From sequence record NC_019407.1: a stretch of DNA of 64,000 nt. One strand, written 5' to 3'. The position numbers and the translations under genes are program-made. Each line of letters begins with the position of its first letter. Positions within the stretch are counted from its first letter, which is position 1. This document shows positions 3,109-52,528 of this stretch, piece after piece. The notes below the pieces were generated by a model that saw only the letters and a program-made list of their open reading frames with translations, did no database searches and had not been told where the DNA came from.

Positions 3109-4730
3109 AATCCGTCCCCGAAGACCTGATGGCGCACCTCCAGGAGGAGGTGACCACGCTCGCGACGTGCATCACGATCGTGCGCCAGGACGGCAAGGCG
3201 TTCTTCATGACCGACCACGACCGGCCGATCAAGTTCGAGAACCAGACCTACGTCCCCTACGACTCCTACCAGCGCACGTCGATCCTGATGTCGTCGGAAC
3301 TGGAAGTCGACACCGCCGACATCACCGCCTTCCTGACCTCGAACGGGGTGACGCGCGACGATGTGGCCTCGGGCCTGTTCGACTACGCCGCGATCAAGGT
3401 CCAGTTGCTGAACTACGAGCGGCCCGAGGACGGGGCGATCCTGCTCCGCAAGGGCACGTTCGGCGAAGTGACCATGAACCAGGACGAGACCTTCTCGGCC
3501 GAAATCCGGGGCATGACCCAGGTCCTGACCTACCGGGTCGGGGAGACCTACGCGCCCGAGTGCCGGGCCGACCTCGGCGACCGCCGCTGCAAGATCGGCC
3601 TGATGCCTGAGGAATGGCAGGCCAACAAATACTACGGCCTCGACGCCTGCGTGCTGGGCGAACTCGTCGCCCCCACGTCGTTCGTCAATCCCGTGGTCGT
3701 CAACGGCAACTTCGAGGACGGCGCGCTCAACGCCGTCGTCACCGCGCCGACGGGCTGGGTGGCCTATGGCGATCCGACCAGCCGCTGGGTCTACAAGCAC
3801 GACTGGTACAATCTGTCGCGCCCGCAGGTCGGCAACCAGTTCATCGCCGCCACCCGCACCTCGATCTCCGACAAGCAGGAAGTCGCCGGCATCTACCAGG
3901 ACATCAACCTCGTCTCCGCCGGCGTGCCGGCCGCCGCGATCGACGGCGGCCTCTGCCGCGTGCGCTACAAGTCCTTCGCCGCCTGCCTCAACAACCGCGC
4001 CCAGTCGCGCGAGCGCCTGACCTGCATCAAGGCCGACGGCTCGGTCGAGACGATCTGGGACACCGGCGAGATCAAGTACCCTGAGGACCGCTGGATCGCG
4101 GTCAACGCCGACGACATCCTGATCCCGGCCGGCACCCGCGTCCTGCGCATCGATCTGTGGTCCAAGAAGCGCAGCGTCCACGAAGAGGGCGCGGCCTATG
4201 ACGGGATCAGCCTGTCGATCAACCTGCCGGCGGGCACGGCCGGCAACGCCCATGTCTATGGCGGGGTGATGTTCAAGTGCATCCAGGCGGGGATCAGCGG
4301 CGGCACCCAGCCGGCCTGGACCAACGAACTGGGCGCCACCTATACCGACGGCACGGTCATCTGGCAATGCGTGACCAACTACAAGAAGGTGGGCACGGTC
4401 GCCACGGTCGCCTCCAACAAGTCGTTCACCTCGACCGACATCACCGAGCCGGCCGGTCACTATGACGGCGGCGTGCTCTACTGGGAAACCGGCCGCAACG
4501 CCGGACGCGCCCAGGAGATCAAGACCTGGGCCGCCAACCTCTTCACGCTCTTCCAGCGCACCTACTATCCGATCACGGCGGGCGACCGCTTCGTGGTCTA
4601 TCCCGGCTGCGACAAGCGCCGCGCCACCTGCGCCGACAAGTTCCACAATATCCACAATTTCCGCGCCGAGCCCGACGTGCCCGGCCAGGACATCTACTAC
4701 CGCACGCCCAACGCTCCGGAGCAGGAATGA
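3105..4730 (+). CDS. GTA-like tail hub protein (DUF2163 plus BR0599-like C-terminus) with internal inserted domain
   Basis: N-terminal TDHDRPI; CRADLGDRRC; C-terminal PGCDKR..TC..KFHNIHNFRAEP. Confidence 0.85.
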   Translation: MKSVPEDLMAHLQEEVTTLATCITIVRQDGKAFFMTDHDRPIKFENQTYVPYDSYQRTSILMSSELEVDTADITAFLTSNGVTRDDVASGLFDYAAIKVQLLNYERPEDGAILLRKGTFGEVTMNQDETFSAEIRGMTQVLTYRVGETYAPECRADLGDRRCKIGLMPEEWQANKYYGLDACVLGELVAPTSFVNPVVVNGNFEDGALNAVVTAPTGWVAYGDPTSRWVYKHDWYNLSRPQVGNQFIAATRTSISDKQEVAGIYQDINLVSAGVPAAAIDGGLCRVRYKSFAACLNNRAQSRERLTCIKADGSVETIWDTGEIKYPEDRWIAVNADDILIPAGTRVLRIDLWSKKRSVHEEGAAYDGISLSINLPAGTAGNAHVYGGVMFKCIQAGISGGTQPAWTNELGATYTDGTVIWQCVTNYKKVGTVATVASNKSFTSTDITEPAGHYDGGVLYWETGRNAGRAQEIKTWAANLFTLFQRTYYPITAGDRFVVYPGCDKRRATCADKFHNIHNFRAEPDVPGQDIYYRTPNAPEQE

Positions 4731-5152
4731 CCCGCGACGACATCGTGACCGAAGCGCGCCGCTATGTCGCGCTCCAAACCCCCTGGCGCCATCGAGGCCG
4801 CACCGAGCGCGGCCTCGACTGCATCGGGCTGGCCGTCATGATCTTCGAGAAGTTCAACCTGGAGTACATGGACCAGGATGGCTACGCGCGCACGCCCGAC
4901 GGCGAGAAGTTCGTCGACGTGATCCGCCAGCACATGACCCTGGCCGATCCGACGGCGCTCAAGCCGGGCATGCTGCTGCTGTTCAACGACGACGCCCGGC
5001 CCTGCCATGTCGGCATCCTGGCGCGCCAGCACGGGCGCCTGACCCTGATCCACGCGACCGCCGACAAGAAGCGGACGGTCGAGGAAGTCTATGACCGCCG
5101 CTATGCCGCCCGGTTCCGCATGGCCTTCGATTTCCCCGGCGTTGAGGACTAA
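4727..5152 (+). CDS. NlpC/P60 family tail-associated peptidase
   Basis: PWRHRGR...GLDCIGL catalytic Cys, HVGI and LIHA His motifs. Confidence 0.92.
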   Translation: MTRDDIVTEARRYVALQTPWRHRGRTERGLDCIGLAVMIFEKFNLEYMDQDGYARTPDGEKFVDVIRQHMTLADPTALKPGMLLLFNDDARPCHVGILARQHGRLTLIHATADKKRTVEEVYDRRYAARFRMAFDFPGVED

Positions 5153-5154
5153 TC

Positions 5155-8100
5155 ATGGCCGCCGCCATTGCCCTTCCGATCGTCTCCGCCATTGTCAGCA
5201 CGGCGATCAGCTACGCGTTCCCGAGCGACGGCCCGCGCCTGCGCGACACCAAGGTCTCGGCCTCGACCTACGGCAACGTGATCCCGGAAATCTACGGGAC
5301 CGCGCGTGTCGGCGGCAACATGATCTGGTCCAAGCCGTTCACCGAGAAGAAGAAGAAGAAGCGGGCCGGCAAGGGCGGCTCCTACTACAACGAGTACACC
5401 TACTACTGCGACTTCGCCATGGCCTTCTGCCGGGGGCCGGTCAAGGAAGTGCGCCGCATCTGGGCCGACGGCAAGGTGATCTACGACACCACCGGCGGCT
5501 CGGAGGTGATCGACAACAACAAGTACCGCTTCCGCTTCTATCCCGGCGACGAAGCGCAGCTTCCCGACAGCCTCATCGTCGAGGACAAGGGCGCCGACTA
5601 CGCGCCGGCCTATCGCGGGCTCTGCTATGTCGTGTTCGACGACTTCGCCCTGGCCGATTTCGGCAACCGCATCCCGCAGATCATGGCCGAAGTCTACGCC
5701 GGCGACGAAGGCGGCGCGGCGATCACCGACATCGTCCCGCTGCCTAGTTCTCCGGTCACCGGCGGCTCCTACCAGCTTGGCCAGATGATGATCGACGCCG
5801 ACCGGGGCTACTTCTACCTCGTCGATTCGGTGTCCAACCCGGCGGGCACCGTCCTGCGTCGCTTCCTGCTGGCGAACGGTAAGGAAGACCGTCGTGAGAT
5901 CGTCTCGATCCCGCAGGCCCAGTTCCCGCCCTCGGTCTATGACAGCCCCGACCTGACCTCGGTCCGGGCGGTCACCTCCAAGGGCGAGCTTCTCTGCGTC
6001 TTCGGCGGCATCAACAACTACATGCGGATCGAGAAGCTCGATCCCTATTCCTGGCAGTCCCTGGGGACGATCGGCCGCAGCTATCCTTTCGAGGGCACCC
6101 CCGAAAACAGCCTGGAACACTCCAACACCAATTTCGAGATTTCGCGGGACGACAAGGGCAACTACCTCTGCCTGACGCTGGGGGTGTTTGGCGAGTACAA
6201 CATCTTCGACCCCTCCGACATGTCGTTCAAGGCCAAGGGGGAAATGGCGGGCTGGGGTGGTCCGGGCACGCCGATGTACATCTGCGCCCGCCAGGGCGGC
6301 GCGACGGCTTCCCGCCGGTTCTTCCACGTCACCTATACGGGCGGGGCGTCCTTGCAGGTGTGCAGCCTGAACGAGGTGCTCTACAATCATCCGCTTGATC
6401 ATCCTGGAGATTCCCAGACCGCGACGTCCTGGGCCTTCTGGGACGAGGGCGATCCGGGGGTGGTCTTCTTCTATTCCGACGGCCCCAACCGCTACATCGC
6501 CAAGTGGTCCGAATCCACCGGCGTGCTGGCCTGGAAGACCCAGCTTCGCAACTCCGATCCGTTCTGCGGCTATGGGGTCTATGGCCTGCGCGCCCGGATC
6601 AAGGACAACGAGTTCCACTGGGTCTACAACAAGCACCTGTTCTCGATCAACACCGCCACGGGCCAGTGGATCGACCGGACCTTCGACCAGGACTTCTACA
6701 AGAGCGACAACGACAAGACCGCCGAACAGGTCAACGACGGCGACAAGGGCCTGCTGCTGCCGCGCGACATCTCCGAGGACTATGTCATCTACGATCCGCG
6801 CCGCAACATCGTGATCTGCATCGGGGCGATTCAAGCCCAGAACGGCATCGTTCACGTCGGCGGCTATACGGGCGGCAGGACCTCGGTGGGGGCGATCGTC
6901 GAGCGCCTTCTGGTCTCCACGGGGCAGATGACCTCGAACGACTACGATCTGACGCCGCTCTACGACATCCCGGTCTACGGGTACGGCTACGCCTCCTCGA
7001 CCGACATCAAGTCGATCATCGCCGAACTGCGCAACCTCTTCATGTTCGACCTCGTCGAGAGCGACGGCCGGCTGGTCGCGCGCGTGCGCGGCGATCAGGA
7101 CCCCGACGCCGAGGTGCCCTGGAAGCTCCTGGGCTCCCAGGGCGGCCCGACTCCGGACAAGGCCGACTACTGGAAAGAGACCCGGATGTCGGAGTCCGAC
7201 CTTCCGGCCTCGATCGACCTGACCTATTCGAACATCGACGACGATTATAACCCCTCGACGGCCAAGTCCAAGCGGATCGCCTCGCCGGTGGCGACCATGC
7301 TGTCGCGCCAGCAGGTCAAGGCCGAGTGCAACCTCGTCATGGACGCGACCGAGGCCAAGAACCGCGTCAACATCATGCTCTACACCCAGTGGGAGGAGCG
7401 CACGCAGCATCAGACGGCCCTTCCCTGGCTCTACGCCAATCTCGACGCCTCGGACCTGATCTCGGTGACCATGGAGGACGGCCGCAACTACTTCGAGCGG
7501 ATCGGCTCGATCGAGTTCGGCGCCGACTTCTCCTCGCGCCTGGAAACCTACGGCACCGACAGCGGCGCCTACCTTTCGGACAAGACCGGCGATGGCGGCG
7601 GCGCCGGCCGCCCGACCGTCGTGCCGGCCCCCAAGCCGGTGGTGGGCTTCATCCTCAACACCCCGCTGCTGCGCGACACCCACGACAGCGGCGGCAACTT
7701 CTCCAACTGGTATAGCGCCATCGGCGCGGGCGCGCCGGGTGTGTTCCTCGGCGGCACGATGTTCAAGTCCGCCAATTCGCAGGACTACGTTGATCTCTAC
7801 CAGGAACCGGAGAGCGCCGAGTGGGGCACGGTGATGGGTGTCGTGCCCTCGCCCTCGCACGGCTGGTTCGCGCTCGACTGGGAGACGCGCATCACCATCA
7901 CCCCGGCGGTCGATTTCTTCGAACTGGAATCGATCACCGACGACGAGCTTTGGGAAGGGCTCAATCTCGTGGTCATCGGCGACGAGGTCCTCCAGTTCCG
8001 CGACGCGGTCCAGAACGCCGACGGCACCTGGACGATCTGGAACCTGCTGCGCGGCCGGCGCGGGACGCAGTACGCCTGCGACAATCACAAGGCGGGCGAG

Positions 8101-23552: not shown

Positions 23553-23658
23553 GGGGTCTCGTTCTCGCGTCGAGGCGCGATGCGTTAAAAAGCCCTGAGA
23601 AATCAGGGCCTTAGATTGACAGCAAAGGATGGTTAAGATAGCCTGAGGGGTCCCGAAA

Positions 23659-23673
23659 GTCAAGATTCACGAC
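23659..23673 (-). promoter_or_regulatory. GTCGTGAATCTTGAC element / nrdA promoter
   Basis: Motif followed by TTGACT-17-TATCTT on the minus strand. Confidence 0.78.
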
Positions 23674-23714
23674 ACTCGTGAACCCCTCAAAGATTCCTTG
23701 ACAGCCCCTCGGAT

Positions 23715-37980: not shown

Positions 37981-37995
37981 GTCAAGATTCACGAC
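37981..37995 (-). promoter_or_regulatory. GTCGTGAATCTTGAC element
   Basis: Exact copy, back-to-back with the ncRNA promoter. Confidence 0.75.
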
Positions 37996-37996
37996 A

Positions 37997-38024
37997 TTGA
38001 CTGTCGTGAGCCACCACGCTAGAC
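37997..38024 (+). promoter_or_regulatory. Caulobacter sigma73-type promoter
   Basis: TTGACT-15 nt-GCTAGAC. Confidence 0.75.
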
Positions 38025-38026
38025 AG

Positions 38027-38690
38027 GGGGCTACGGGCCGTCCTCCTGCGTTAGCCCCGCCGCCGCGCCTTCCAGGCGGCGAAGGTCGGGACGGAGCCGA
38101 AGGCGAGCCGGCCGAGGCAGCGGTTGGTGAGCAAAAGGAGAACCCGGCGAGCGGCGGAAGGCGAGTTCCTCGCCCTCGAACTCGGAAAGCACGTGGTGAT
38201 GCCGGAACCACCGCGCTCGCGCGGACGTCTGGACGTTGCTAGGCGTAAGGCTGGCCTGCCGAGAAATGGAAACGGCCGGGGCGGACGGGACTTGATCTCG
38301 TCCGCCTTTCCGCCTAAGCTTCCCTCATTGCAGGCGCAGCACCGCCCCTTGCTAACGGCCCCGAGGGGTACGCGGGGGCTATGAAGCCTTGCCTGGGCAG
38401 GACTGCCACTGAACCAGGAACGCCCTGGGCCGCGTATCGCCCATGACGCGAACGCCGGCCGAGAACAGGCGACTAGGCGTGACGGCGACCAGAGGTCGCA
38501 CGATATTCCAAGCTCGGTAGAGCGATCGGCGGGCCGGGGCGCGAGCCTCGTTTCGAGAGCCAGGGCAACCCGTCATAGGTCCTGGTCGGGCGACGAGGCA
38601 GCAAGTCCTGCGAACGGAGCCTCTGAGGCGGCGTCACCAAGATGCAGCAGACGCAAAAAGGCCCCGATCTTGCGATCGGGGCCTTTTCAT
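38027..38690 (+). ncRNA. Candidate ~660-nt large structured ncRNA (unassigned)
   Basis: Own promoter and terminator, no credible ORF, many local stems plus a long-range GGCGGAA/TTCCGCC pairing. Confidence 0.65.
38655..38687. terminator. Bidirectional intrinsic terminator
   Basis: AAAAAGGCCCCGATC-TTGC-GATCGGGGCCTTTT. Confidence 0.92.
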
Positions 38691-38692
38691 GT

Positions 38693-38781
38693 TGGAGCTT
38701 CGGGAGGGACTCGAACCCTCATAGGTGTTCCCACCAGCAGAGATTTGCAATCCCGCGCCTAACCTCTCAGTCCACCGAAGC
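38693..38781 (-). tRNA. tRNA-Cys(GCA) with long variable arm
   Basis: GCTTCGG/CCGAAGC acceptor, U73, encoded CCA, loop TT-GCA-AA, T arm GAGGG-TTCGAGT-CCCTC, extra GGTG-GGAA-CACC stem. Confidence 0.9.
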
Positions 38782-38784
38782 ACA

Positions 38785-38965
38785 AAAGGACCTCGACGCC
38801 CGAAGGCCCGAGGTCCGATCCGTAACCAGGGGAGGGCCGTAGCTGTCCCCTGACCCTGAACGACAGGTGGCGGGCTTGGTCGTCATCCCGTCAGGCTCGC
38901 GGCGCCGCTCGCCTGAACCGCCGATATGCCACGAGGGCAGTGATCCGCAGGTCCCCATAAATAGC
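38785..38965 (-). ncRNA. Candidate ~180-nt structured RNA between the GOLLD-like terminator and tRNA-Cys
   Basis: Non-coding; CAGGC/GCCTG, GTGGC/GCCAC and CAGGGG/CCCCTG stems; ends in a U-tailed hairpin. Confidence 0.4.
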
Positions 38966-39000
38966 AAAAAGGCCACGATCCGCGAGGACCGTGGCCTTTT
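38966..39000. terminator. Intrinsic terminator
   Basis: AAAAAGGCCACG...CGTGGCCTTTT. Confidence 0.88.
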
Positions 39001-39004
39001 CGTT

Positions 39005-39878
39005 TTCCGATGGGCTGAGACTACACCCATCAGCAATCCCGCTTCGAGGATTATTCCCCAGGTGCGACCCCAGGTATTCCCTCGACGTCCACCAGACCCC
39101 TTGCGGTAGTCCAGTCCGAGATCATCGCCGCCGTTCTTGCGCACCCCGAAGGGATTGCGGGTCTGGCGTTTGACCCATCATGGCGAACTACTCGACAGTT
39201 CCTTCCCCGCTGGGCTTGCGACCCACTCACCGGCGCTAACCGGCTGACGAAGCTCTTCCTATCGACACCTCGCGGGCTTGCGACCCTTGAGATGACTCCG
39301 TTACCCGAAGGCCGGAGCATTTGGCGACTTACGTCCGCCACTGGACCAGTCTTTGCGTTTTTCATCGAAGCGGGGATTGAACCCGCGACCGACAGCTTAA
39401 GAGGCTGTTGCACTACCACTGTGCTATTCGCAAACCCACCAAGACGTGCTGGTCCAGTTGTTCCCAGAGCTTTTGACCCCAGAAATGCAACACGCCTCAT
39501 ATCTTTCGCCTTGCGGGCTACTCGACTGCTCTTCAGGACCCCGTCTCCCCCAACCTTTCGGCCAGGATGCCCAGCACCCCTCGAACTGAAGCAAAGCTCT
39601 TCACCGCGAAGTGTCGAACCCTGCAACCCAAACGGTTATCCGTACTCCCTAGACGCGCTTGCACGGGATAGTCCGCTTGCGACGGACTGGCGGTTAAAGC
39701 CTCGGAGTTACCCCGGCCCCGCCTTGTCTCCCACGGTCTTCAGGTCTATCCCCTTTTGCAAGAGGCGGCCAGCTTCCCAGCCCGGACCCGTCGGCTTCCT
39801 CTGTCCTCTTGCGAGGTCGGGCGGCCTATGGGAGACCGTCCCTGTCACCCCGTCGCCGGGGCTTTCGTCAGAAGCGAC
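39005..39878 (-). ncRNA. GOLLD-like giant structured RNA (~870 nt)
   Basis: Promoter and terminator bounded; at least 8 GNRA and 2 UUCG hairpins; GTCGAGTAG twice, one in a loop-E-like AGUA/GAA context; internal tRNA module; next to phage tRNAs. Family call is from recalled GOLLD features, not a search. Confidence 0.72.
39362..39433 (-). tRNA. tRNA-Lys(CTT)-like module embedded in the GOLLD-like RNA; degenerate acceptor stem, no CCA
   Basis: D arm GCAC/GTGC, ACAGC-CTCTTAA-GCTGT, GCGGG-TTCAATC-CCCGC; only about 4-5 acceptor pairs. Confidence 0.8.
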
Positions 39879-39884
39879 GATGAC

Positions 39885-39913
39885 GTTCTAGCGACAGCCC
39901 ACGTCGTCGTCAA
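39885..39913 (-). promoter_or_regulatory. Sigma73-type promoter of the GOLLD-like RNA
   Basis: TTGACG-15 nt-GCTAGAAC. Confidence 0.82.
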
Positions 39914-39969
39914 CGACTTTTTCCGTCTCGATGTCGAATTTTTTCGACAGTCGTGGATGACGACAGTGC

Positions 39970-39998
39970 TTGACATTCTCGTAAGCCCATGCTAGGTG
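39970..39998 (+). promoter_or_regulatory. Sigma73-type promoter of the tmRNA/tRNA unit (divergent)
   Basis: TTGACA-15 nt-GCTAGGT. Confidence 0.72.
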
Positions 39999-40003
39999 TC
40001 GGA

Positions 40004-40375
40004 AATCGTTGTAATTCGGACAACGGAACTGGCGGCAAGACAGGGGTGCGAATCCCCTCGCCTCCACCATCGACGCCCGGCGCTGGGAGTACGCGACTCC
40101 TGGGCAGGGTGCGTTACCCTGGCGGGCTGCGGCCCGAGCCAAGGGGTAGCCGGGCGTCGTTGATGGGGGCGACTAGCTTTCGATTGGCGCTCGGGACTGA
40201 AAGACGCAACGGTGGGTGACCTCCACATCGGCTTGCCGGTGATCGGGTCAGGCAACAGTAAATGTCGCCGACAATGACAACGACGTCGTGGCTTTCGCCT
40301 CGGCTCGTGAAGCCATCGCCGCCTAATAAGCGGTAGAGGAGCCCGCCGGGAGCTTGGCAACAGAATCCCGGCAAC
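40004..40375 (+). ncRNA. ssrA: Two-piece (circularly permuted) alphaproteobacterial-type tmRNA
   Basis: Acceptor piece ends GAC-AGGGG-TGCGAAT-CCCCT-CGCCTCC-A-CCA (40069). Intervening segment closed by CGACGCCCGGC/GCCGGGCGTCG. Coding piece starts GGGGGCG (40165), giving G3:U70. Tag 40267-40326 reads ADNDNDVVAFASAREAIAA with tandem TAA. Confidence 0.93.
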
Positions 40376-40507
40376 CCCCTTTCGCAGGCGGGAACACCAA
40401 CAGGCGATCTGTCGGGCGACCGATTTCCGATCCGTGTTCCCGTCTTCGAAAGGTGGTCGGGCCTACCCTCTTGGTGTGCTATCCAAGGGTCTGGCCACTT
40501 TACAGAA

Positions 40508-40586
40508 CGCGGGGTAGAGGAGTCCGGTTGTCCTCGTCTGGCTCATAACCAGGAGATCGTGGGTTCAAATCCCACTCCCGCTCCCA
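40508..40586 (+). tRNA. tRNA-Met(CAT), initiator-like
   Basis: CGCGGGG 5' end with C1:U72 mismatch, CT-CAT-AA loop, GTGGG-TTCAAAT-CCCAC, CCA encoded. Confidence 0.9.
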
Positions 40587-40588
40587 AT

Positions 40589-40985
40589 GCGAACGCCGGC
40601 TGTTGAGAACGACGGCGTGACAAGCTCGGAGAGAACGAGCACTCCAGTCCGGGGTATGAGGCCGGACTAGCGGACGCCGTAGCGATTGCAGGCGTGACAC
40701 CCGGAGATAGCGGGACCGGCTTTCCGAGCCGCATGCTCGGCGCGTAAGACCGCAGGCCTCGGCCATCGGGCTGTGTCAGGGGATGAGGCTAGTCCTCGGC
40801 TAACCACCTAGCGGTGAAGCTAGGGCATGCGGTTCGGAAAGCCGGTTCGCACCTTCCGCGCGGACCTCGACGAGAGGAAAAGCGCCAGGACCACGGTCCT
40901 GAGATTCGACGGCTGCATGCAGCCTCCTGATCTGACTACGGTTCGACGGGACGAGCGGTGAAAGCCCGTGTCGACCGACTGGTGG
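40589..40985 (+). ncRNA. Array of about 12 short hairpins between two tRNAs (candidate sRNA)
   Basis: ACGCC/GGCGT twice, GCTCG/CGAGC, AGTCCGG/CCGGACT, CCGAGC/GCTCGG, CCTAGC/GCTAGG, AGGACC/GGTCCT and others; no credible ORF. Confidence 0.5.
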
Positions 40986-40995
40986 GTGAGATTTT

Positions 40996-41080
40996 GGTAC
41001 GGTGGCTCGACAGGTAAGGCATCGGCCTCATAAGCCGAGGGTTCGTCCCAATCCTGGTTCAAATCCAGGTCGTACCTCCA
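40996..41080 (+). tRNA. tRNA with CAT anticodon (Met or Ile2) and long variable arm
   Basis: GGTACGG/TCGTACC acceptor, U73, CCA, TCGGC-CTCATAA-GCCGA, extra GGG-TTCGT-CCC arm, CCTGG-TTCAAAT-CCAGG. Confidence 0.88.
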
Positions 41081-41154
41081 AATCGACGCTTGACCCCAGG
41101 CCGCAGGCTGCTAAGCTTCCCCGGTCGGGATCGTCCCGCGTCCTTTCCAAGGTC

Positions 41155-41184
41155 AAGCCCCCGGAGCCTCGCTTCGGGGGCTTT
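41155..41184. terminator. Intrinsic terminator ending the tmRNA/tRNA unit
   Basis: AAGCCCC-CGGAGC...GCTTCG-GGGCTTTT. Confidence 0.8.
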
Positions 41185-49941: not shown

Positions 49942-50034
49942 GGCAAACTCCGAAAGGCAGGCTTGAGTGAATGTGTTGCCGATCCTTCTAGCGAGGCGTT
50001 CTGGCTCTGTCAACACACTCCAGCCTACCGGGAT

Positions 50035-52454: not shown

Positions 52455-52469
52455 GTCATGAATCTTGAC
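52455..52469 (+). promoter_or_regulatory. GTCATGAATCTTGAC element / primase promoter
   Basis: Followed by TTGACA-16-GCTAGA. Confidence 0.78.
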
Positions 52470-52528
52470 ACCTGTCGGGATTGGAGGCTAGATGGCTCCC
52501 GCCTTTCACCCCCGTCCCGACAGGCTTC

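Follow-up and report, generated by a model that had tools for sequence, protein, structure and literature searches.

The RNAs described here have their closest known counterparts in phages and in the bacteria that phages infect. According to Kretsch et al. (bioRxiv 10.1101/2024.12.08.627333), GOLLD RNAs, many of which exceed 800 nucleotides (nt), lie beside phage transfer RNA (tRNA) genes, sometimes hold a tRNA in a linker, and consist of a 3′ region that is conserved and a 5′ region that is less so. ROOL RNA (RF03087) is also phage-borne and adjoins tRNAs, and shows a many-helix, 'ornate' structure with no obvious protein partner. In the two-piece transfer-messenger RNA (tmRNA) of alphaproteobacteria (RF04321/RF01849), the acceptor piece with its CCA comes first, and a long precursor stalk flanks the excised segment. 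The locus compared with these systems lies in a stretch of 64,000 nt (hereafter the window) of Caulobacter virus Magneto (NC_019407.1/JX100812.1, 100% identity; the window coordinate equals the record coordinate minus 62000), in which positions 37997-41184 (record positions 99997-103184) form an island of ∼3.2 kb flanked by the DNA methyltransferase gp125 and by gp127, with a helicase gene further downstream. As a whole, the island is probably best explained as a protein-free cluster of non-coding RNA (ncRNA) genes that is conserved in, and common to, the phiCbK-like phages (Dolichocephalovirinae), between their DNA methyltransferase and helicase genes. In phiCbK, for which an infection RNA-seq data set is listed in the PhageExpressionAtlas (PMC13478754), the corresponding stretch is 101.1-104.5 kb. 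The GOLLD RNA and the tmRNA of Magneto are members of known families; a structured RNA of ∼650 nt (RNA-1), a structured leader preceding tRNA-Cys (the Cys leader) and a small repeated RNA module appear to be undescribed so far.

The GenBank annotation of the island consists of four tRNAs and one 'hypothetical protein', gp126, and the Magneto genome paper reports tRNAs as the sole RNAs (Gill 2012, PMC3556154). No credible open reading frame (ORF) was found in the island by codon composition or by substitution pattern. The ORFs of at least 40 amino acids have G+C contents of 0.55-0.74 at third codon positions (GC3) and 0.49-0.70 at second positions (GC2), as opposed to 0.86-0.93 and 0.42-0.50, respectively, in the flanking true genes. 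The sole annotated coding sequence (CDS), gp126 (CcrMagneto_gp126; 38051-38563, minus strand), has a GC3 of 0.73 and a GC2 of 0.70. When it was compared with Karma, substitutions over codon positions 1, 2 and 3 amounted to 23, 19 and 16, an even spread without a third-position excess, and one to three 1-nt indels separate its frame between close relatives. Since gp126 begins at a CTG codon, shows no codon-position bias and suffers frameshifting indels among relatives, it is very likely a mis-annotated, spurious protein gene; it overlaps RNA-1 on the opposite strand, and counterparts have been annotated in Karma, phiCbK, Ccr10 and Rogue. The published annotation lists a spurious protein gene and lacks both the tmRNA and GOLLD.

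The GOLLD RNA was identified by a match to RF02032 of 169.4 bits (gathering score, 150; E = 8e-46) that covers model positions 1-416 of 416. The Rfam-matched 3′ part extends from 39498 to 39012 and the less conserved 5′ part from 39882 to 39499 on the minus strand, with tRNA-Cys as the neighbour on one side and the tmRNA and tRNA-Met genes on the other. The Magneto RNA resembles known GOLLD RNAs in its whole-model match, its phage location next to tRNAs and its linker tRNA, would also do so in its predicted layout of regions and predicted size, and is unlike them in its host context, that of a GC-rich alphaproteobacterial (Caulobacter) phage. A full-text literature search found no publication linking GOLLD with Caulobacter. 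The orthologue in phage BL57 scored 169.7 bits, and the region is near-identical in other Shapirovirus members; GOLLD was undetected in the Poindextervirus, Colossusvirus and Brevundimonas-phage loci scanned, and in Rogue and BL10 the remainder of the island is present with no GOLLD match. The tRNA-like insert in the linker has a weak outer acceptor stem and no CCA. It is identical in Magneto, Karma, phiCbK, Ccr10 and BL57 apart from 5 nt of the anticodon loop, which reads CUCUUAA in Magneto and Karma (Lys CUU, with canonical U33 and A37) and CGUCCUA or CAUCCUA in phiCbK, Ccr10 and BL57 (called Gly UCC, with non-canonical positions 33 and 37). From these alignments, it looks like a targeted swap of the anticodon loop between otherwise identical copies. 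GOLLD has had no known function since 2009, and is now placed in lytic phages of Caulobacter crescentus, for which good genetic tools exist; its function becomes directly testable because relatives with no GOLLD match (Rogue, BL10) keep the island, and among those bearing GOLLD the embedded tRNA's anticodon loop is the only difference. In the Brevundimonas phage Bajun, ∼1 kb between the Cys leader and the tmRNA (∼4570-5630 of our locus L009; L numbers designate the loci analysed) contains no annotated gene and no Rfam match at gathering score; this segment, which occupies the position of GOLLD in Magneto, may hold another large RNA.

The tmRNA matched RF04321 (tmRNA_permuted) with 70.3 bits against a gathering score of 47. 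In the permuted order reported by ARAGORN, the 3′ tRNA domain (40031-40069) is encoded ahead of the 5′ tRNA domain (40165-40191); the acceptor piece extends as far as the CCA at 40069, followed by an intervening segment (40070-40164) and by the coding piece from 40165. The tag ORF with its stops (40264-40332) specifies (V)ADNDNDVVAFASAREAIAA and then two stop codons. Read from the sequence, the 5′ GGGGGCG of the acceptor stem pairs with CGCCUCC, after which come A73 and CCA, giving G3·U70, and a precursor stalk of 24 nt joins 40058-40081 to 40149-40172. The resemblance to the alphaproteobacterial two-piece tmRNA accordingly extends over the acceptor piece with CCA encoded first, G3·U70, A73, a host-like tag start, a tag ending in AA before the stop codons, and the long stalk flanking the excised segment; the tag of the host (Caulobacter) tmRNA starts with AANDN. 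Unlike that of the host, the Magneto tmRNA is phage-encoded, has a longer tag and would be co-transcribed with an initiator-like tRNA. Scores above the RF04321 gathering score were obtained in all relatives tested, and AANDN...AA-type tag peptides are kept across five lineages. ARAGORN missed the tmRNA in CcrBL10, CcrRogue, CcrColossus, Gurke and Marchewka (L003, L004, L008, L010 and L013), while the Rfam model found all of them (57-90 bits), and the published statements that these phages have no tmRNA are probably false negatives. Directly after the tag stop codons, GGTAGAGGAGCCCG (40332-40345) resembles the D-arm region of the neighbouring tRNA-fMet (40513-40526), and a hairpin with 41-nt arms that are 76% complementary (40374-40457) lies downstream of the coding piece.

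The structure of RNA-1 was predicted with RNAalifold over eight phages and tested by counting pairs against slid partners and shuffles. The prediction comprises 179 pairs in 31 helices; 92.8% of cells were paired, compared with 36-43% when the partners were slid, and pairs with compensatory changes on both sides numbered 43, compared with 6-14 in the slid controls. None of 500 shuffles reached the observed values. The plus strand was assigned because many G-U pairs take part in the covariation; folding of the single sequence gave z values of about -3 on both strands, and hence no strand call. The promoter and the terminator of RNA-1 are almost invariant across genera, and its nearly invariant single-stranded blocks include AGGCGCAGCAC, GGACUG and GAGAGCCA. 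RNA-1 is like ROOL in being phage-borne next to tRNAs, in having many helices with no obvious protein partner, and in size (659 nt for ROOL env-120). It is unlike ROOL in that its conserved sequence blocks are unrelated, it was detected only in Dolichocephalovirinae, and no Rfam model, that of ROOL included, matched 38030-38690 at E ≤ 10 with permissive filters. Outside Dolichocephalovirinae, only chance-level pattern matches were obtained: the pattern AGGCGCAGCACYGC-N45-75-GGACTG found 10 viral and at least 120 metagenome matches, with the module downstream in three known relatives alone among the matches listed, and these matches were rejected as distant forms of RNA-1 since, by a rough estimate, their number is about that expected by chance. 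A core of ∼55 nt is the sole part of RNA-1 matched by blastn in distant jumbo phages.

The Cys leader is conserved from Magneto to the Brevundimonas phage Bajun, and 21 of its 42 predicted pairs show compensatory changes among Magneto, BL57, Rogue, BL10 and Bajun. A 24-nt block (GGGACAGCUAYGGCNCUCCCYUGG) shows hardly any variation and the hairpin tip CGGCGCCG, a palindrome, shows none; the 3′ end consists of a terminator-like hairpin with a U tract (38815-38785) abutting tRNA-Cys. A first-pass annotation, made from the letters of the DNA, had described the island as devoid of protein-style ORFs and as holding two giant ncRNA candidates, a two-piece tmRNA, a hairpin array and three atypical tRNAs, of which standard annotation would show only the tRNAs. 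RNA-1 and GOLLD correspond to the giant candidates and the spacer S2 (40587-40995) to the hairpin array, and the codon statistics, the Rfam and ARAGORN searches it had proposed, the folding score of S2 and the published records agree with this description throughout; covariation among relatives, which it had named as a check, was found in RNA-1 and in the Cys leader. Absent from that annotation were the Cys leader, the repeated module and a fourth promoter. Besides its three atypical tRNAs, which are real, there is a fourth tRNA-like element, the one inside GOLLD.

A motif built from twenty-five copies of the module, and the covariance model R1 made from it, describe an element of 60-70 nt composed of yUGAnG-nGAACGCC, a loop of 10-25 nt, GGCGUGAC, and a hairpin with an AGA or GAGAGA loop. 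With R1, exactly three copies were found in the window, all on the plus strand and all in the island: one inside RNA-1 and two in S2, where copy 2 starts at the CCA of tRNA-fMet and copy 3 follows 81 nt further on. Its secondary structure is conserved: the terminal hairpin (helix P2) covaries, and the ACGCC/GGCGU helix (helix P1) is almost invariant, with one compensatory A-U. Tandem arrays occur in PW, Colossus, Gurke, Marchewka and the IMG/VR contig L209; in Colossusvirus, the Brevundimonas phages and L209 they comprise 2-7 units of ∼230 nt with a module at each unit end; several units have a TTGAC box behind the module, and tRNA-Cys directly adjoins the last one. A wider search with the 3′ half only (GGCGTGACAG-N3-5-GAGAGAC) matched at least 120 viral contigs that are unrelated. 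Among the matches listed, to which all counts from this search refer, 90 of 118 unique instances have ACGCC or ACGUC upstream, the sole frequent variation in this 5′ arm being C to U, which retains G·U pairing. The outer stem of helix P2 is complementary in 93 of the 118 (20 with shuffled partners) and is built from 34 different stem sequences, and the spacing between the two arms of helix P1 ranges from 4 to 40 nt. The copies occupy short co-directional intergenic regions, 14 of them being directly flanked by tRNA genes; recurrent upstream genes encode the major head protein and a Gp2.5-like single-stranded DNA-binding protein, and those downstream include genes for a head-tail adaptor and DNA polymerase. 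The locus adds a 650-nt structured RNA and a small RNA motif present in at least 120 viral contigs, both outside Rfam.

An earlier form of the module pattern was too loose on genome contigs, where 2 of the 100 loci screened look real: compact modules in metagenome-assembled genome (MAG) contigs of Verrucomicrobiota and Anaerolineaceae (L030, 964-1029, minus strand; L076, 952-1018, minus strand). The copy in L076 lies directly behind a tRNA 3′ end, and both contigs may be prophages. Hammerhead, HDV (hepatitis delta virus)-like and K-turn readings of the module were tried by eye and dropped, none fitting all copies.

As an element that would mark the borders between RNA units, the module is tentatively read as autonomous, forming or protecting RNA ends through processing, termination or an exonuclease block; this is a possibility to which we give somewhat less than an even chance. 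Several points weigh against it and against the wider picture of the island. Helix P1 is nearly invariant in sequence, and a sequence-specific partner is therefore as likely as an autonomous fold. Among the copies of the wider search, taken as an unbiased sample, the distance from the module to the start codon downstream (mostly 5-30 nt) is shorter than that to the stop codon upstream, a position that also fits a 5′ untranslated region or a translation element, and in RNA-1 it is internal, not terminal. The U-rich tail after its hairpin contains TTTT in 20 of 109 cases (∼2 in control windows), which may merely reflect intergenic base composition. The covariation comes from few independent lineages, about four for RNA-1 and three for the Cys leader, the 5′ region of GOLLD is no more stable than shuffled sequence (z = -1.0), and every 5′ or 3′ transcript end and every processing step discussed here is deduced.

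Two other explanations concern RNA-1 and its neighbours. If the RNA-1 region coded for the hypothetical protein gp126, its structure would be incidental to a GC-rich gene, which would suit the CDSs that annotation gives for this region in Magneto, Karma, phiCbK, Ccr10 and Rogue and the minus-strand open frames of 119-224 codons found there; however, besides the start codon, composition, substitutions and indels of gp126 given above, the annotated frames vary in extent among phages, CcrBL10 has no CDS annotated here, the compensatory pairs, many of them via G-U, belong to the strand opposite gp126, and a conserved promoter and terminator enclose RNA-1 on the plus strand. A coding origin of this region is thus extremely improbable. 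It is less far-fetched, though still unlikely, that RNA-1, the Cys leader and S2 are mere leaders, trailers or decayed tRNA remnants of tRNA and tmRNA operons, kept for processing and without function in trans. The length of S2 is indeed highly variable between genera, T-arm-like hairpins (in Colossusvirus and Brevundimonas phages) and pieces resembling tRNA fragments (in the Ccr10 insertion) are seen, the Cys leader directly adjoins its tRNA, and the module adjoins tRNAs in many phages. RNA-1, however, has its own conserved promoter and terminator with no tRNA within its transcription unit, ∼30 of its helices are kept across genera, and the near-invariance of its single-stranded blocks speaks for more than a spacer.

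The other alternatives concern mainly the module. Bacterial Y RNAs (YrlA, RF02553), which accompany Ro60, are, like the module, small structured RNAs that occur in tandem, and next to a TROVE gene in the Brevundimonas phages; the module and RNA-1 units could accordingly be Y-RNA-like partners of a phage Ro60 (TROVE) protein, given that a TROVE/vWA gene stands directly upstream of the module array in Brevundimonas jumbo phages and that the phages with multi-unit arrays (PW, Colossus, Gurke and Marchewka) all have a TROVE gene. Yet tblastn with the TROVE protein gave no match in Magneto, phiCbK, Rogue, BL10 or Bajun, all of which retain RNA-1 and the module, the TROVE gene of CcrPW lies ∼22 kb from the island, and no YrlA or Y_RNA match was obtained for the module, either within the island or within the Marchewka array. 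CcrPW, Xanthomonas phage Olaya and Rhizobium phage TM30, moreover, have YrlA-like RNAs of their own (RF02553, E 1e-8 to 7e-3) just upstream of TROVE with no module nearby. The link was dropped because of these YrlA-like RNAs and the missing TROVE match in Magneto, and is largely refuted. That the module works as DNA, as an operator or upstream promoter element, might be suggested by the almost invariant arms ACGCC/GGCGT of helix P1 and by the TTGAC box 2-10 nt after the module in the PW, Colossus, Gurke and Marchewka arrays, but it is very unlikely: every copy is on the transcribed strand, the arm spacing varies, the C to U changes in the 5′ arm preserve pairing in RNA and not in DNA, the hairpin covaries, and many copies lie so close to a tRNA (0-10 nt) or a start codon (5-30 nt) that no space is left for a promoter. 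By analogy with theta (HDV-like) ribozymes, the module might instead be a self-cleaving ribozyme of a new kind, or a specific nuclease site, at which polycistronic phage RNAs are cut. Phages are reported to place these minimal HDV-like ribozymes beside tRNAs (PMC10879173), as small conserved RNAs directly next to the genes, much like the module. The ∼20 nearly invariant nucleotides in junctions and loops together with covarying stems, the presence in phages whose hosts are unrelated as well as in a few MAG contigs of bacteria, and the location exactly at unit borders (right after the CCA of tRNA-fMet, or 0-10 nt before tRNAs) would agree with such cleavage. Nevertheless, the module matches no Rfam family, those of ribozymes included, no HDV-like nested double pseudoknot could be drawn, a pseudoknot between the loop of helix P1 and the 3′ tail gave no signal (3.22 observed, 3.22 with shuffled partners), and the module, unlike theta ribozymes, is also found between protein genes. 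Cleavage of this kind is quite unlikely.

The first-pass annotation had also proposed that the island takes over or repairs translation during infection. Such a role is plausible and fits the gene content, given a G3·U70 tmRNA with an AANDN...AA-type tag, an initiator-like tRNA, and GOLLD beside tRNAs. The island could then be an RNA toolkit expressed early in infection, a source of ribosome rescue, of initiator and rare tRNAs, and of large GOLLD-like RNA assemblies. A bolder and doubtful extension would make RNA-1 the representative of a third class of giant phage RNAs, unrelated to GOLLD and ROOL and acting, like them, as RNA-only assemblies, and the module a new, widespread self-processing or end-forming element, used without host-specific factors to cut or stabilise tRNA, small-RNA and highly expressed mRNA units.

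To locate transcription units, the window was searched with the pattern TTGAC-N15-18-GCTA, which resembles the Caulobacter sigma-73 consensus. Seven matches were found in 64 kb (0.49 expected), four of them in the island, at 37997 (+), 39913 (-), 39970 (+) and 41090 (+). Three sigma73-like promoters had been claimed at first; their presence was upheld, and their number was not, the island having four. The convergent and divergent transcription units described at the same time are also what the promoter and terminator predictions give. The -35 box of promoter P1 sits within the palindrome CACGACA..TGTCGTG, and the block ACATTGACTGTCGTGA and the -10 element (GCTA; GTTA in Karma) are kept across Shapirovirus, BL57 and Poindextervirus. 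Terminator-like sites numbered 9, versus 4.3 ± 2.2 in shuffles. That at 38655-38690, an inverted repeat of 14 bp that is perfect and has an A/U tract at either side, is conserved in all relatives and is a near-duplicate of the one at 38965-39002; other sites in the scan were 38809-38788 (-) and 41167-41179 (+), and no plus-strand terminator was predicted between promoter P3 and 41167. From promoter P1, the highly structured RNA-1 would be made and would stop at the bidirectional terminator. A weak promoter overlapping the GOLLD terminator would give the structured Cys leader and tRNA-Cys with its long variable arm. Promoter P2 would produce the GOLLD RNA with its tRNA-like insert, and promoter P3 a single precursor of ∼1.2 kb containing the permuted tmRNA, the initiator-like tRNA-Met, S2 and the tRNA-Met with a long variable arm, which would be cut into its parts by the host RNase P, RNase Z or RNase E, and probably by RNase III at the long stalks. 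The positions of all features are collected in the table.

Table. Features of the island in window coordinates, and related features in other loci (positions within the locus named)
Feature	Position	Strand	Basis or remark
Promoter P1, for RNA-1	37997-38025	+	TTGACT-N15-GCTAGACA, pattern match
RNA-1, structured ncRNA, ∼650 nt	38030-38690	+	5′ end deduced from promoter P1, 3′ end from terminator
Module copy 1, inside RNA-1	38436-38506	+	R1, 79.8 bits
Bidirectional intrinsic terminator	38655-38690	both	ends RNA-1 (+) and tRNA-Cys (-)
tRNA-Cys(GCA), 89 nt	38693-38781	-	ARAGORN; Rfam tRNA, 33.8 bits
Cys leader, structured RNA, ∼175 nt	38782-38958	-	covariation, conservation
GOLLD RNA, predicted transcript ∼915 nt	38962-39882	-	RF02032; ends from promoter P2 and terminator
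GOLLD terminator	39002-38965	-	terminator scan
tRNA-like insert in GOLLD linker, called tRNA-Lys(CUU)	39361-39434	-	ARAGORN; Rfam tRNA, 56.1 bits, model positions 4-67 only
Promoter P2, for GOLLD	39889-39913	-	TTGACG-N15-GCTA, pattern match
Promoter P3, for tmRNA/tRNA-fMet/spacer/tRNA-Met unit	39970-39994	+	pattern match
Permuted two-piece tmRNA precursor	40001-40417	+	ARAGORN 'Permuted'; RF04321
tRNA-Met(CAU), initiator-like	40508-40586	+	ARAGORN; Rfam tRNA, 48.4 bits
Module copy 2, in S2	40577-40645	+	R1, 52.7 bits
Structured spacer S2, ∼410 nt	40587-40995	+	folding z-score -5.1 versus shuffled sequence
Module copy 3, in S2	40658-40722	+	R1, 39.3 bits
Second tRNA-Met(CAU), 85 nt	40996-41080	+	ARAGORN; Rfam tRNA, 47.4 bits
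Promoter-like P4, ∼65-nt tail and intrinsic terminator	41090-41184 (P4 41090-41113; terminator ∼41160-41184)	+	pattern match, terminator scan
GOLLD tRNA-like insert in relatives	L011 2464-2537; L006 3164-3237		
TROVE-vWA loci	L010 2130-3500; L013 2082-3467; L242 3001-4410; L241 2992-4311; L244 2911-4479		

The other three matches of the promoter pattern lie outside the island, at 23639-23663 (-), 49989-50013 (-) and 52465-52490 (+). The palindrome CACGAC(A/T)GTCGTG, or halves of it, occurs at 37990-38008 (the -35 region of promoter P1), 39946-39955 (upstream of promoter P3), 23668-23680 and 2383-2395; the copies at promoter P1 and upstream of promoter P3 are exact, and one with a single mismatch is next to the promoter match at 23639-23663. 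The palindrome may be an operator. As a window-wide motif, GACWGTCGTG was discarded, its 11 matches not being an enrichment over the 10.4 expected.

The Ro60/TROVE-vWA proteins are encoded by Brevundimonas jumbo phages, CcrPW, CcrColossus, Xanthomonas, Rhizobium and crAss-like phages, and others. Just upstream of TROVE, two to three sub-threshold YrlA-like RNAs were seen in the three loci scanned for them (CcrPW, Olaya and TM30).

In the island, ARAGORN called the permuted tmRNA, tRNA-Cys, two tRNA-Met and one tRNA-Lys. The tRNA-Cys, conserved in all relatives, combines a long variable arm and U73 with a D stem of 3 bp, and its CCA is encoded. The first tRNA-Met, annotated as tRNA-fMet in CcrBL10, has a C1xU72 mismatch, C73 and an encoded CCA; the second shares with tRNA-Cys the long variable arm, the 3-bp D stem, U73 and the encoded CCA. 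All three of these CCA-bearing tRNAs depart from the canonical form (in which Cys and Met tRNAs have a class I variable loop, the D stem has 4 bp and the discriminator is standard), and all still exceed the Rfam tRNA gathering score. The class-II-like arms of tRNA-Cys and the second tRNA-Met are accompanied by lengths of 85-89 nt that are kept in all relatives checked. Judging from these features, the CAU tRNA at 40996-41080 could be charged as Met or Ile2, and the tRNA with the Cys anticodon as Cys or Ser.

In S2, a stalk of 22 bp (40715-40736 with 40825-40846; inverted repeat, 95% complementary) covaries in Rogue and BL10 and looks like an RNase III substrate. Across genera, the length of S2 ranges from 134 to ∼450 nt, and that of Magneto includes a lineage-specific insertion of ∼150 nt (40850-40995). 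The insertion of Ccr10 aligned to it (L012, ∼3950-4070) contains T-arm-like and D-arm-like tRNA fragments, and T-arm-like hairpins with GGUUCGA are present in the Colossusvirus and Brevundimonas-phage spacers; S2 seems to have been built from tRNAs that decayed or were split. Downstream of the second tRNA-Met, the tail unit is conserved, and its terminator stem shows compensatory changes in BL57. The promoter-like P4 stands before a plus-strand protein gene in Rogue and BL10, and the unit is either a small RNA or a relic promoter.

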